A stretch of 63,637 nucleotides of DNA, counting the filler, from Octopus bimaculoides (taxonomy: Eukaryota), in the NCBI RefSeq assembly GCF_001194135.2. It is 7 parts of 6 records of this genome, joined end to end, with 100 filler letters (N's around TTAATTAATTAA, not from the genome) between each part and the next. Parts side by side here need not be neighbours in the genome. Positions count along the whole stretch, not along the records: positions 1 to 22,228 come from NC_069001.1; 6 more parts are not named here. The stretch is one strand, 5' to 3'. The translations under genes were made by a program, and so were the position numbers. The notes under the pieces are model-generated. The model saw only the letters and a list, made by a program, of their open reading frames with translations. It had not been told where the DNA came from and did not search any database. This document shows, one piece after another, positions 15,955 through 22,228 of the stretch (within the stretch, counting starts at the first letter, position 1; each line of letters opens with the position of its first letter).

Positions 15955-16575
15955 ATGTTATATCAGTGTCATCATTAACATCGTCACCATCTTCATCACC
16001 AGCATCATTATTAACATCATCAATAGCGTTGTCATCGTCATAGTCGTTGTTGTCGTCATCATTTGCGTCATCATTGTCGCCATCGTCATTGCCGTTGTCA
16101 TCATCATCATCATCATCATCGCTGTTGTCATTGTTACCATCGTCGTCGTCGTCGTCGCCGTCGTCACCATCCTCATTGTCGTCGTCGTTGTCATCGTTAT
16201 CGTCATCATCGTCGTCACCATCATCATCGTTGTCATCATTATCATCATCGTCGTCGTCATCATCGTTGTCATCATCATCATCATCGTCGTCGTCGTTGTC
16301 ACCATTGTCGTCATCGTCGTCGTCGTTGTCATCGTCGTCGTCGTTGTCATCGTCGTCATCATTGTTGTCGTCGTCATCATCATCATTATCATCGCCGTCG
16401 TCACCATCATCATCGTTGTCATCATCATCGTCGTCATCGTTGTCATGATCATTGTCATCATCATCATCATCATCATCGTTGTCATCATCATCATCATCGT
16501 CGTCATCATCATCATCGTTGTCATCATCATCATCGTCGTCATCATTGTCATCATCATCATCATCATTATTGCTAT
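15955..16575. repeat. 620-bp cryptic (ATC/GTC/TTG)n trinucleotide repeat
   Basis: Direct reading; gives poly-D, poly-S, poly-M/T and poly-H/R frames. Similar tracts at ~18530-19005 and ~42510-42740. Confidence 0.95.
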
Positions 16576-18513: not shown

Positions 18514-18835
18514 AGATTATGATGGTAGTAGAAATGGTGATTAAAAAAAGACAATGTTGACATAATGATGATGATGGTGGCAAGGACTTTATAGTAACAG
18601 CAATATTGGTGGTGATGACATGATGGTGTTGAAGTGACAACATCATTGCTGATGATGGCGGCGATAATGGCGACAAAGACGACCATGATGAGAACAACAA
18701 CTACGATGATGATGGTGATGATTATGATAAGGATGGTGACAATGACGTCAGTGACAACGACTGATGTTGCTCCTGGTGATGGTGACGACGACGACGACGA
18801 CGATGATGAGGATGATGATGATGATGATGATGAGG

Positions 18836-18868
<33 letters not shown>

Positions 18869-19188
18869 CTAACGACCACAGAACTGATGAAAGTACTGCT
18901 GATACCTAGAACTCTACCGACAACAACAACAATAACAAAAAGTGATGATGACGATGATGATGATGATGACGATGATGATGACGATGATGATGACGATGAT
19001 GATAGCATGGTGTTGAGTGTCAAAGCTAGTGTAAACAATGTCGATAGGAGATTTGTAGTTGTTATGGTCACTTGGCTATTAATTCTTTTCAATCAAGTGG
19101 ACAATAGTTAATCTATTTGCTGACATGTTGGGTGTATATAATAATAAAATTGACTGCTCTGTCACCTAGCTATTAACACAAATACACA

Positions 19189-20986: not shown

Positions 20987-21052
20987 ATGGCTAGAAGAGA
21001 TTTTGGTTCTTTCCATGCTTCAAACGTACAAGAACTCTTGGAATTACCAGAT
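20987..21052 (+). CDS. First coding exon (MARRDFGSFHASNVQELLELPD) of a putative Egt2/LCD-like class-V PLP C-S lyase
   Basis: Acceptor ttctatcttttcAG ends at 20925 (alternative AG ends at 20935); ATG in acaATGg context at 20987; 22 codons; donor AT|GTGAAT at 21053; joins the next exon in phase 0. Confidence 0.75.
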
Positions 21053-21190
21053 GTGAATATTTTATTTATTTACTTATTTTTATTCTTTTAATTCAATTTT
21101 TTTTTTCATCGTGTGTGCTTCTTTCAAATCATTTACTCTGTGTCCTTATCTTTTATGCTGGTCTCTCCTCTCATAGTCAATAGGAGAAAG

Positions 21191-21436
21191 TGCAGTTCTA
21201 TATTTAAGAGATGAGGAATTATGTACATTATTTACATTTGACGGATATTTGTCCTCATCTTGTTTGTTGTTAACACAACATTTCGGCTGATATACCCTCC
21301 AGCCTTCATCAGGTGTCTTTGGGAAATTTCGAACCAGGGTTCTCATTCCTAAGGTATTTTTTGATGTTATTATTATTATTATTATTATTCAGGTCATCGC
21401 CTGGAATCGAACTCAGAATCTTGGGGTTAGTAGCCC
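21191..21436 (-). mobile_element. tRNA-headed SINE-like element (A-box lost) carrying a hammerhead motif and (ATGTAAATA) tail
   Basis: Reverse complement reads gggctactaaccccaagattctgagttcgattccagg, (AAT)n, cctgatgaaggctggagggtatatcagccgaaatgttgtgtt, atgtaaataatgtacat. Confidence 0.8.
21272..21317 (-). ncRNA. Minimal type-I hammerhead ribozyme motif
   Basis: GACAC-CUGAUGA-A-GGCUG(GAGGGUAUAU)CAGCC-GAAA-U-GUU^GUGUU: 5-bp stem I, 5-bp stem II, near-palindromic loopless stem III. Confidence 0.7.
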
Positions 21437-21439
21437 ACA

Positions 21440-21509
21440 GGCACATGGTGTAACAGTTAAGAGCACAGGCTACTAACCCCAAGATTCCGAGTTCGATTCC
21501 AGGCAGTGA

Positions 21510-21549
<40 letters not shown>

Positions 21550-21610
21550 CATAATAATAATAATAATGATAATAATATAACATCGAAAAATACCTTAGAA
21601 ATGAGAACCA
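21440..21610 (+). mobile_element. Inverted 5' copy of the same element (tRNA-like head, 3'-truncated before the hammerhead)
   Basis: ggcacatggtgtaacagttaagagcacaggctactaaccccaagattccgagttcgattccagg (A-box-like, B-box GAGTTCGATTCC), (AAT)n, ends atgagaacca. Confidence 0.8.
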
Positions 21611-21691
21611 CTCTGACCACCGCTACCACTGCCACCACCACCACCACCACCACTACAGCAACTACTTTCCTTCTTTTCTGTATTCAACCAG

Positions 21692-21802
21692 GAGAAGTAT
21701 GAAGCACCCCACTTCCCAGTAGACCAGCCTTCATTCGAAGAATATAAGAACAACCCACCAGAGTTTGGCAAAGAGATGAGAAAGAAGCATTTTCTCCTGG
21801 AG
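21692..21802 (+). CDS. Second coding exon (EKYEAPHFPVDQPSFEEYKNNPPEFGKEMRKKHFLLE) of the same putative lyase
   Basis: Polypyrimidine acceptor ctttccttcttttctgtattcaacCAG; 111 nt open in phase 0; consensus donor GAG|GTAAGT. FGxEMRxxHFLL resembles the motif just before the xNHG(A/S)FG signature of Egt2/LCD-like enzymes (family recalled from memory). Confidence 0.85.
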
Positions 21803-21986
21803 GTAAGTCTGGAGATATTTCAGTCTGAAACTCAAACCACCCTGGCCTCTAGACAGTAACAGAAGGGACCGATTGGATAAGTACTAGGCTTACAAAGAAT
21901 AAGTCCTGGGGTTGATTTGCTCAATTAAAGGCGGTGTTCCAGCATGGCCACAGTCAAATGACTGAAACAAGTAAAAGAGTAAAAGA

Positions 21987-22228
21987 ATGATCCCCCGATC
22001 CCTTATCTGGTGGTCAATGAGGAAACTTGGGATAGAAGAATGGTTAGTGAGAGCTGTGCGAGCCATGTACAGAGATGCTGCCAGTAAGGTGAGGGTTGGA
22101 AATGAGTACAGCAATGAATTCCGGGTAGAGGTAGGGGTCCACCAAGGTTCCGTCCTCAGCCCCCTATTATTTACCATAGTCCTCCAGGCAATCACAGAGG
22201 AGTTCAAGACAGGTTGCCCCTGGGAGCT
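21987..22228 (+). pseudogene. RTE-clade reverse transcriptase fragment (runs into a gap)
   Basis: IPRSLIWWSMRKLGIEEWLVRAVRAMYRDAASKVRVGNEYSNEFRVEVGVHQGSVLSPLLFTIVLQAITEEFKTGCPWE contains the RT GVxQGSVLSPLLF motif. Confidence 0.9.

Follow-up and report, generated by a model that had tools for sequence, protein, structure and literature searches.

The stretch of Octopus bimaculoides DNA analysed here (the window: 63,637 nucleotides of joined genomic parts, filler included) carries at 20987-21802 the first two coding exons of LOC106884095, a gene that is already annotated yet uncharacterised, and whose exons and splice are confirmed. LOC106884095 represents, in cephalopods, a family of class-V, fold-type-I enzymes dependent on pyridoxal phosphate (PLP) that extends across eukaryotes and has the hercynylcysteine sulfoxide lyase Egt2 of fungi as its closest characterised relative. 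On computational evidence, we consider it fairly likely that this Egt2-like family, as a candidate, performs the C-S lyase step of ovothiol/5-thiohistidine synthesis in animals, in which it would act on the product of the synthase OvoA. The gene and its fold are of known kinds; the proposed role in ovothiol synthesis is the new part, the family having apparently been recruited to this pathway or having ancestrally served it.

The two exons splice to a product of 59 residues (MARRDFGSFHASNVQELLELPDEKYEAPHFPVDQPSFEEYKNNPPEFGKEMRKKHFLLE), which is the same translation as obtained in an earlier reading of the sequence alone (the first-pass annotation), and which is identical to the start of P0152 ('uncharacterized protein LOC106884095 [Octopus bimaculoides]', NCBI). 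In tblastn comparisons exon 1 is 100% identical to residues 1-22 of both P0152 and P0134, and exon 2 is 100% identical to residues 23-59 of P0152 (E=1.5e-19). P0134 is the O. vulgaris protein named 'probable L-cysteine desulfhydrase, chloroplastic' (P0165 is a truncated isoform of it) and has 58 of the 59 residues in common with the octopus peptide. The Argonauta hians protein P0116, with 71% and 52% identity to exon 1 and exon 2, respectively (tblastn), is a clear orthologue. As short open frames flanked by splice-like signals are frequent, homology served as the criterion, and the agreement found goes far beyond chance. In an exhaustive HMMER search against 1.84 billion representative proteins, 20 matches had E<=1e-3, the best at 2.8e-10, and most of these cover query residues 2/3 to 58/59 unbroken, at their own N-termini and across the splice junction. 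Such an unbroken alignment over the junction is possible in no other way than with the exons joined as proposed. As the first-pass annotation had assumed, the join of 21052 to 21692 is used in the annotated proteins of both octopus species, O. bimaculoides and O. vulgaris, and homologues from other phyla run across it; its remark that the exons are absent from the track of open reading frames (ORFs) holds for the exons, which have just 22 and 37 codons, but not for the gene, which was already annotated in NCBI. Both phase-0 intron positions look old and conserved, because short read-through ORFs from genomic DNA of other organisms (P0008, P0009, P0011, P0016 and P0018) stop at the same two places, i.e. 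after ...LP[E/R] and after ...HF[LFY][LI][E/D/K], in each case followed by a Val derived from the GT donor.

The start codon lies in a good context (aacaATGg, with A at -3 and G at +4), and an in-frame TAA upstream without an ATG in between supports 20987 as the translation start. The N-termini of orthologues, of the form M-x-x-(K/R)-R-D-F-G-S-F, begin at the same place. Exon 2 is preceded by a pyrimidine tract and the acceptor ...ttcaaccag/GAG at 21691/21692. No further exons of the gene were found in 1-22228 by tblastn with cephalopod proteins; the next exon, expected to encode ...P-E-V-T-F-I-N-H-G-A-F-G..., falls outside the window, beyond 22228.

Features of LOC106884095 in the window. A slash within a sequence marks an exon-intron boundary.
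Feature	Position	Strand	Description
Upstream stop, in-frame TAA	20927..20929	+	60 nt 5' of start codon; no intervening ATG
Exon 1, coding	20987..21052	+	22 codons, MARRDFGSFHASNVQELLELPD; donor GAT/gtgaat at 21052/21053
Intron 1	21053..21691	+	639 nt, phase 0; GT...AG, pyrimidine tract; houses hairpin repeat 21338-21609
Exon 2, coding	21692..21802	+	37 codons, EKYEAPHFPVDQPSFEEYKNNPPEFGKEMRKKHFLLE; donor GAG/gtaagt at 21802/21803
Intron 2, 5' part	21803..22228	+	perfect gtaagt donor; stops at piece end; reverse transcriptase fragment 21987-22228

On their own, the 59 residues found nothing relevant in Pfam, NCBIfam or the PDB (the sole PDB match, to a plastid protein at E=0.36, is a chance match); they lack a Pfam match because they sit N-terminal to the PF00266 model (aminotransferase class V). 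A word-index protein search with the same residues, which reported no candidate with three shared 5-residue words, was a false negative, as can occur there with short queries, P0152 being present in the same collection. The family call had been made from this short N-terminal segment only, and the 59 residues alone could indeed not have confirmed it. The full-length members, of about 430-460 residues, match PF00266 with 65-105 bits (cut-off 21.5; E 1e-18 to 1e-30), while Aminotran_1_2 is matched only weakly and in second place (E 2e-7 to 1e-2), and P0152, which begins with the 59 residues, has a precomputed PF00266 annotation.

In a sequence comparison of the family member P0002 with the PDB, Egt2 of Neurospora crassa (5uts) is the first of 82 matches (E=1.6e-33), and the alignment begins exactly at FGKICRKKHFYLEDDCTFLNHGAFG, the motif that the first-pass annotation had named as preceding NHG(A/S)FG in fungal Egt2. 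This motif was found in 5uts, where the PDB sequence alignment pairs the Egt2 segment with FGK..RKKHF.LE...TFLNHGAFG of the family. The last 13 residues of exon 2 constitute the corresponding helix (FGxxxRxKHFLLE), which aligns to Egt2 and precedes NHGAFG: the window encodes FGKEMRKKHFLLE, and O. vulgaris continues with PEVTFINHGAFG, i.e. an Egt2-type FG......F.L(D/E) helix followed by NHG(S/A)FG. After ...HFLLE full-length members read (D/E)xxTFLNHGAFG, and the O. vulgaris and Argonauta proteins continue past exon 2 as ...HFLLEPEVTFINHGAFG... and ...HFLLEPDVTIINHGAFG..., respectively.

An AlphaFold2 model of the Argonauta orthologue has a predicted local distance difference test score (pLDDT) of 92.6 and a predicted template modelling score (pTM) of 0.93. 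Within it the stretch matching the window peptide has pLDDT 81-97, and residues 53-59 are helical, in blocks with pLDDT 91-97. A Foldseek search with this model placed the Egt2 structures 5v12, 5uts and 5v1x first (E 1e-28, template modelling score (TM) 0.78-0.80), LolT equal second, and C-DES (TM ~0.66) and SufS well behind. Egt2 being the top PDB relative by sequence as well as by fold, the Egt2-like class-V assignment is borne out.

The residues required for PLP chemistry are conserved throughout. The columns of Egt2 K247, H246, N244 and D221 are conserved in 52 of the 52 eukaryotic members aligned, the Schiff-base lysine and the aspartate of the PLP pyridine nitrogen being invariant in all of these. 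The lysine of (S/A)NAHKW, a motif present in all three cephalopod proteins as had been expected of a PLP enzyme, and the aspartate of DGAH both occur in P0152, P0134 and P0116, and are encoded outside the window. The column of Egt2 Y134 contains Tyr in 51 of the 52 eukaryotic members, e.g. ...FFLNTTYGAV in O. vulgaris. PMC10585658, citing Irani et al. 2018, assigns Egt2 Tyr134 a role in substrate binding and catalysis, whereas the L-cysteine desulfhydrase (LCD) of pepper, a cysteine desulfhydrase without Arg75, has Phe at this position (PMC10585658). This feature of the plant-type LCD is not found in the animal family, which keeps Tyr and resembles the sulfoxide lyase at this position, not the plant desulfhydrase. 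Arg75 and Phe343 of Egt2 are reported to sandwich the sulfenic acid intermediate; Phe343 could not be placed on the chain, as its position is a Glu when chain index and published numbering are offset by +7, the value set by Y134 and K247.

An N-terminal extension, RDFGSFHSSNVQEL...Y.PP..P, is specified by exon 1 together with the first half of exon 2; apart from it, the window codes only for the helix running into the active-site NHGAFG loop. The exon 1 motif RDFGSFH(S/A)SNVQEL is eukaryote-specific and highly conserved, with R4, F6, G7, S8, F9 and N13 invariant or nearly so in 19 taxa, and the extension is kept from Balamuthia and a picozoan to sharks. It is absent in bacterial homologues and has no detectable match in Egt2, and may have evolved to suit the OvoA product or joint action with OvoA. 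In a neighbour-joining (NJ) analysis (one distance tree without bootstrap, the Egt2 root being our choice) the bdelloid sequences fall within the eukaryotic clade on a long branch, and the animal clade is apart from fungal Egt2. A eukaryote-type member with the N-terminal motif YRGFGSFHSDNVEELIALP was also encountered in OY843689.1, a record filed as 'Alphaproteobacteria bacterium CMAR1, chromosome 11'. It is placed at the base of the eukaryotic clade, apart from the bacterial homologues, and the record is either a mis-binned eukaryotic contig or a case of transfer.

Few natural thiol antioxidants are as strong as the ovothiols, which have been studied in relation to fertilisation and stress responses and as drug leads. 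The OvoA product is cleaved by OvoB, which releases 5-thiohistidine, pyruvate and ammonia (PMC9103826). Among animals, OvoB-like sequences have been reported from Hydrozoa only, where OvoB is a horizontally acquired fusion (2021 papers: PMC8433421, PMC8623360). The premise of the first-pass annotation that most marine invertebrates are without a recognisable OvoB is stated in these same two papers, with hydrozoans as the exception. Its second premise, that octopus makes 5-thiohistidine compounds, is found in PMC4768315, which cites 5-thiolhistidine from eggs of O. vulgaris and names ovothiol as a constituent of adenochrome. Reviews and preprints to 2026 describe the lyase step solely via the bacterial enzyme, and the link between the present family and ovothiol appears in no paper of the searchable literature, subscription-only papers being outside this scope.

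The distribution of the family was derived from the best 120 matches to each of two queries, from limpet and elephant shark, and its comparison with that of OvoA is qualitative, at a level that does not resolve copepods and Hydrozoa. The best 120 include molluscs (with three cephalopods), a brachiopod, annelids, a nemertean, echinoderms, hemichordates, amphioxus and tunicates, as well as about 15 cartilaginous fishes, anthozoans, Trichoplax, sponges, bdelloid rotifers and some protists. Bony vertebrates, lampreys, insects and nematodes are missing from the best 120 for either query, though protists at 43-46% identity appear. With the elephant-shark query chondrichthyans have 73-84% identity, and next come hemichordates and echinoderms at 61%. 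OvoA is reported to have persisted in Porifera, Placozoa, Anthozoa, Annelida, Mollusca, Lingula, echinoderms, Saccoglossus, Branchiostoma, Ciona and Callorhinchus, to be present in bdelloids, and to have been lost in nematodes, most arthropods and bony vertebrates (PMC4768315, PMC8433421, PMC8623360); the OvoA of O. bimaculoides is KOF75235 (PMC4768315). The family taxa agree with this range, including the presence in Chondrichthyes and bdelloids and the absence in bony vertebrates. Co-occurrence with OvoA across metazoans, which had been put forward as a check on the idea, is observed, in that the taxa of the best 120 follow the OvoA pattern of PMC4768315 and PMC8433421. In Chlamydomonas, ovothiol A is present at millimolar level via OVOA1 (bioRxiv 10.64898/2026.02.12.702910) and an EGT2 homologue is present while EGT1 is absent (PMC13358676), a combination that is consistent with an ovothiol role. 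As regards expression, a 'hercynylcysteine sulfoxide lyase', presumably the annelid member, marks the protonephridia cluster in a single-cell atlas of Capitella teleta (bioRxiv 10.1101/2020.10.16.342709).

The genes flanking family members provide a further connection. No OvoA gene is present in the window. In the bdelloid Adineta steineri, two tandem family copies lie beside a divergently transcribed OvoA of 747 residues, which has FGE-sulfatase and methyltransferase domains and a full-length match to the OvoA structure 8khq (E=4e-132). On a metagenome contig of a second bdelloid (L002), where OvoA is 76% identical, both genes are within 2 kb of each other in a changed gene order. Screening of JGI metagenome contigs for OvoA by tblastn with the rotifer OvoA identified an additional pair on L092, a eukaryote/protist-like contig of 60% GC: OvoA at 2917-5625 (-) and a family member at 5879-7354 (+) are arranged head-to-head, the start codons of the ORFs as listed being ~250 bp apart. 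This OvoA (902 residues) matches 8khq with E=1e-146 and is 41% identical to the rotifer OvoA; the family member (491 residues) has the N-terminal motif, and in the set compared it is nearest to Balamuthia (42%). The gene pair recurs on a contig from a second sample, L170. The family and OvoA are adjacent in two independent lineages, bdelloids and the protist-like L092/L170. We regard the family as a strong candidate for the lyase of the ovothiol pathway because it shares the animal distribution of OvoA and adjoins OvoA in two distant lineages.

Other features of these contigs were observed. Between the tandem lyase-like genes of A. steineri (L001, 8871-9191, minus strand) the first 107 codons of OvoA are repeated at 95% identity, and the candidate lyase appears to have been duplicated along with the shared divergent promoter and the 5' end of OvoA. 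On L002 an ATP-grasp gene (1898-3121, minus strand) is situated between the candidate lyase and OvoA, with an ABC transporter downstream; this set could represent a small thiohistidine-related cluster. Both OvoA and the adjacent family member of L092/L170 have Arg-rich N-terminal extensions resembling organelle-targeting presequences, which fit the mitochondrial OvoA described in diatoms (PMC9890322). An ORF of 708 residues at the end of contig L005 was considered as OvoA and rejected as unrelated.

The reaction we propose would start from 5-histidylcysteine sulfoxide as made by OvoA. The cysteinyl amine of this compound would displace the PLP lysine to form an external aldimine, and deprotonation of C-alpha would be followed by a PLP-dependent beta-elimination that breaks the C-S bond, as in Egt2. 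Cleavage would free 5-thiohistidine sulfenic acid, which would then be reduced, and the co-product aminoacrylate would give pyruvate and ammonia. The methyltransferase domain of OvoA would methylate the ring to yield ovothiol A, and unmethylated 5-thiohistidine would be the source of the octopus egg thiol and of adenochrome. The enzyme, with its class-V scaffold, would thereby be analogous in function to bacterial OvoB, which has a scaffold of another type (class I/II). For the broader proposal, that the family with the RDFGSFHSSNVQEL extension is the general ovothiol/5-thiohistidine sulfoxide lyase of eukaryotes, which animals, green algae and other protists would use instead of bacterial OvoB and which would have disappeared along with OvoA from ecdysozoans and bony vertebrates, we put the chances at even.

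Several observations weigh against the assignment of the family to the ovothiol pathway. The equivalent of Egt2 Arg75 is ambiguous by one residue, being paired by HMMER with the invariant Arg of a 'DR' motif and by MAFFT with the neighbouring Asp. LolT, a Mannich cyclase, is structurally as near to the family as Egt2. No OvoA was found within 10 kb of family members in A. vaga, A. ricciae and two bdelloid metagenome contigs, nor at the metagenome contig L006 or in Trichoplax, nor on the long-flanked eukaryote-type contigs L091 and L136. The same distance around 80 loci of bacterial homologues (35-40% identical, mostly cyanobacteria), searched by tblastn with rotifer OvoA, contained an OvoA/EgtB-like gene in none of the 80, and bacteria therefore lend no support. 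The taxon absences come from the best 120 matches, so that divergent orthologues may exist. Since the same superfamily is found in angiosperms, which are not ovothiol producers (PMC13358676), membership alone does not fix the substrate, and neither a beta-lyase assay nor genetics of any animal member has been reported in the searchable literature. Finally, in the O. bimaculoides RefSeq protein P0152 ...HFLLE runs directly into KYQRYVERQPL, about 24 residues including NHGAFG being missing.

This last gap bears on the possibility that the gene is damaged or decaying in O. bimaculoides itself and yields a product without the NHGAFG exon, since the ~24 residues dropped by P0152 are present in both O. 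vulgaris and Argonauta. The prediction that the next exon encodes NHG(A/S)FG thus stands for the latter two species, but not for the O. bimaculoides model, which omits that exon. However, the remainder of P0152 is intact and conserved, PLP lysine included, the assembly is a draft with three runs of N in the window, and the O. vulgaris model P0134 in turn is without the segment GLRDYS...IKRA that P0152 and Argonauta carry. Because a different exon is omitted there, annotation or assembly defects look the likely cause of both gaps, and we regard decay of the gene as very unlikely. A second alternative is that the family are L-cysteine/cystine desulfhydrases of the plant LCD or cyanobacterial C-DES type, releasing H2S or persulfide together with pyruvate and ammonia and without any tie to thiohistidine. 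Database names such as 'probable L-cysteine desulfhydrase, chloroplastic' and 'L-cysteine desulfhydrase-like' point in this direction, as does the classification of the plant homologues in PANTHER PTHR43092 'L-cysteine desulfhydrase' (PMC13358676), and C-DES follows as the next distinct relative in the PDB (E=2.4e-20, TM ~0.66). These names, however, were transferred by similarity, not by tests, Egt2 is clearly nearer than C-DES by both sequence and fold, and the family has Tyr at the position of Egt2 Tyr134 where pepper LCD has Phe (PMC10585658). Moreover, a desulfhydrase function would leave both the co-loss with OvoA and the adjacency to OvoA in two lineages unexplained, and we consider it rather improbable.

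Much the same low probability is given to an enzyme of the Egt2/LolT clade with another chemistry or substrate (e.g. an epimerase, a lyase of selenium compounds or a broad cysteine-S-conjugate beta-lyase); its tie to OvoA would then be indirect. The structural neighbours do include a non-lyase, the LolT Mannich cyclase (8dl5/9aza), some members are named 'isopenicillin N epimerase' or 'selenocysteine lyase/cysteine desulfurase', the bacterial homologues are not beside OvoA, and the protonephridial marker of Capitella would fit detoxification (bioRxiv 10.1101/2020.10.16.342709). In LolT, however, NAPSCG stands where the NHG motif has been lost, whereas NHGAFG and Tyr134 are retained in the animal family as in Egt2, and the co-distribution and adjacency with OvoA would have to be coincidence. 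A true Egt2 orthologue in an unrecognised animal ergothioneine pathway would account for Egt2 as the best characterised relative and for the name 'Hercynylcysteine sulfoxide lyase-like' given to a Phallusia protein in one source, and plants with EGT1 were recently found to make ergothioneine (PMC13358676). It is nevertheless the least probable explanation and a highly improbable one: the general description is that animals cannot make ergothioneine (PMC7653990), the animal clade is apart from fungal Egt2 in the NJ tree, and the synthases beside the family in rotifers and the protist have the architecture of OvoA, match 8khq over their length and carry a C-terminal methyltransferase, whereas that of EGT1 is N-terminal.

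The DNA around the two exons is repeat-rich and AT-rich, and the N runs at 704-723, 5755-5826 and 6711-7278 of the window are assembly gaps. The foldback in intron 1 (21338-21609, ~270 nt) is near-perfect, with arms of 96 nt that are 84% complementary, flanks of (ATT)n/(AAT)n and a core GGTCA.CGCCTGGAATCGAACTC.GAATCTTGGGGTTAGTAGCC in one copy per strand. It resembles a pair of repeats placed head-to-head or a miniature inverted-repeat transposable element; its Rfam matches are all far below the gathering scores, and ARAGORN detected no tRNA in it. The reverse transcriptase fragment in intron 2 (21987-22228), on the strand of the gene and ending at the end of the piece, reads …GVHQGSVLSPLLFTIVLQ… and matches RVT_1 with E=1.3e-5 and 25.5 bits, under the Pfam cut-off of 29.6; it is probably the remnant of a long interspersed nuclear element. 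The 200-residue ORFs of poly-Asp, poly-Ser or poly-His on both strands of 16067-16566 and 18777-19003 stem from long imperfect (TCA)n/(TGA)n arrays, which are repeats of low complexity and not genes, and a scan for sigma-70 promoters and terminators was set aside as irrelevant to eukaryote DNA.

The proposal that the Egt2-like family is the ovothiol-pathway lyase supplies a named, cloneable candidate, with orthologues in sea urchin, mussel, Ciona, amphioxus, sharks and octopus, that makes an acknowledged gap in the pathway testable. If true, the whole pathway would be rebuildable heterologously from animal genes, the automatic label 'L-cysteine desulfhydrase, chloroplastic' on many animal proteins would be corrected, and the lyase step would be a clear case of non-orthologous gene displacement, with a class-V Egt2-type enzyme as against a class-I/II OvoB-type enzyme.

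Among known systems, Egt2 (N. crassa 5uts/5v12/5v1x; S. pombe SPBC660.12c) is the best match in both sequence and fold. It shares with the family the class-V PLP fold, the pattern FG......F.L(D/E).....NHG(S/A)FG, the PLP lysine in SN(A/C)HKW, the aspartate of DGA(H/Q) and Tyr134, and the reaction proposed for the family would be the same chemistry on a regio-isomeric sulfoxide. The two differ in that identity is only ~25%, that the RDFGSFHSSNVQEL... extension is found only in the animal/protist family, and in their partners, which are Egt1 (acting at C2 of hercynine) for Egt2 and, as proposed, OvoA (C5 of histidine) for the family. OvoB of Erwinia tasmaniensis performs the same pathway step as proposed for the family. 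OvoB-like proteins have been modelled on C-S lyase or class I/II aminotransferase templates, with superposition of EtOvoB (PMC8433421), whereas the octopus family belongs to class V (PF00266); as Aminotran_5 scores far above Aminotran_1_2, the family would be an analogue of OvoB and not a member of it.

The plant LCD/EGT2 homologues (PTHR43092) belong to the same superfamily and are the origin of the automatic NCBI names of the animal proteins. Plants with EGT1 appear to use a PTHR43092 homologue as Egt2 (PMC13358676), and pepper LCD differs from the family by Phe versus Tyr, the LCD side of this comparison being taken from the description in PMC10585658. LolT, the PLP-dependent Mannich cyclase of loline synthesis (8dl5/9aza/9azb), is as close in fold as Egt2 (TM 0.76-0.77 on the query, E ~5e-28) and second by sequence (E=1.2e-28), but catalyses another reaction, in fungal secondary metabolism, and has NAPSCG instead of NHG(A/S)FG. 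C-DES, the cystine C-S lyase of Synechocystis (1elq), and SufS/NifS have the class-V PLP fold and C-S chemistry on cysteine-derived substrates in common with the family, and are more distant relatives (sequence E 1e-20 and 1e-18, respectively; TM ~0.64-0.69).

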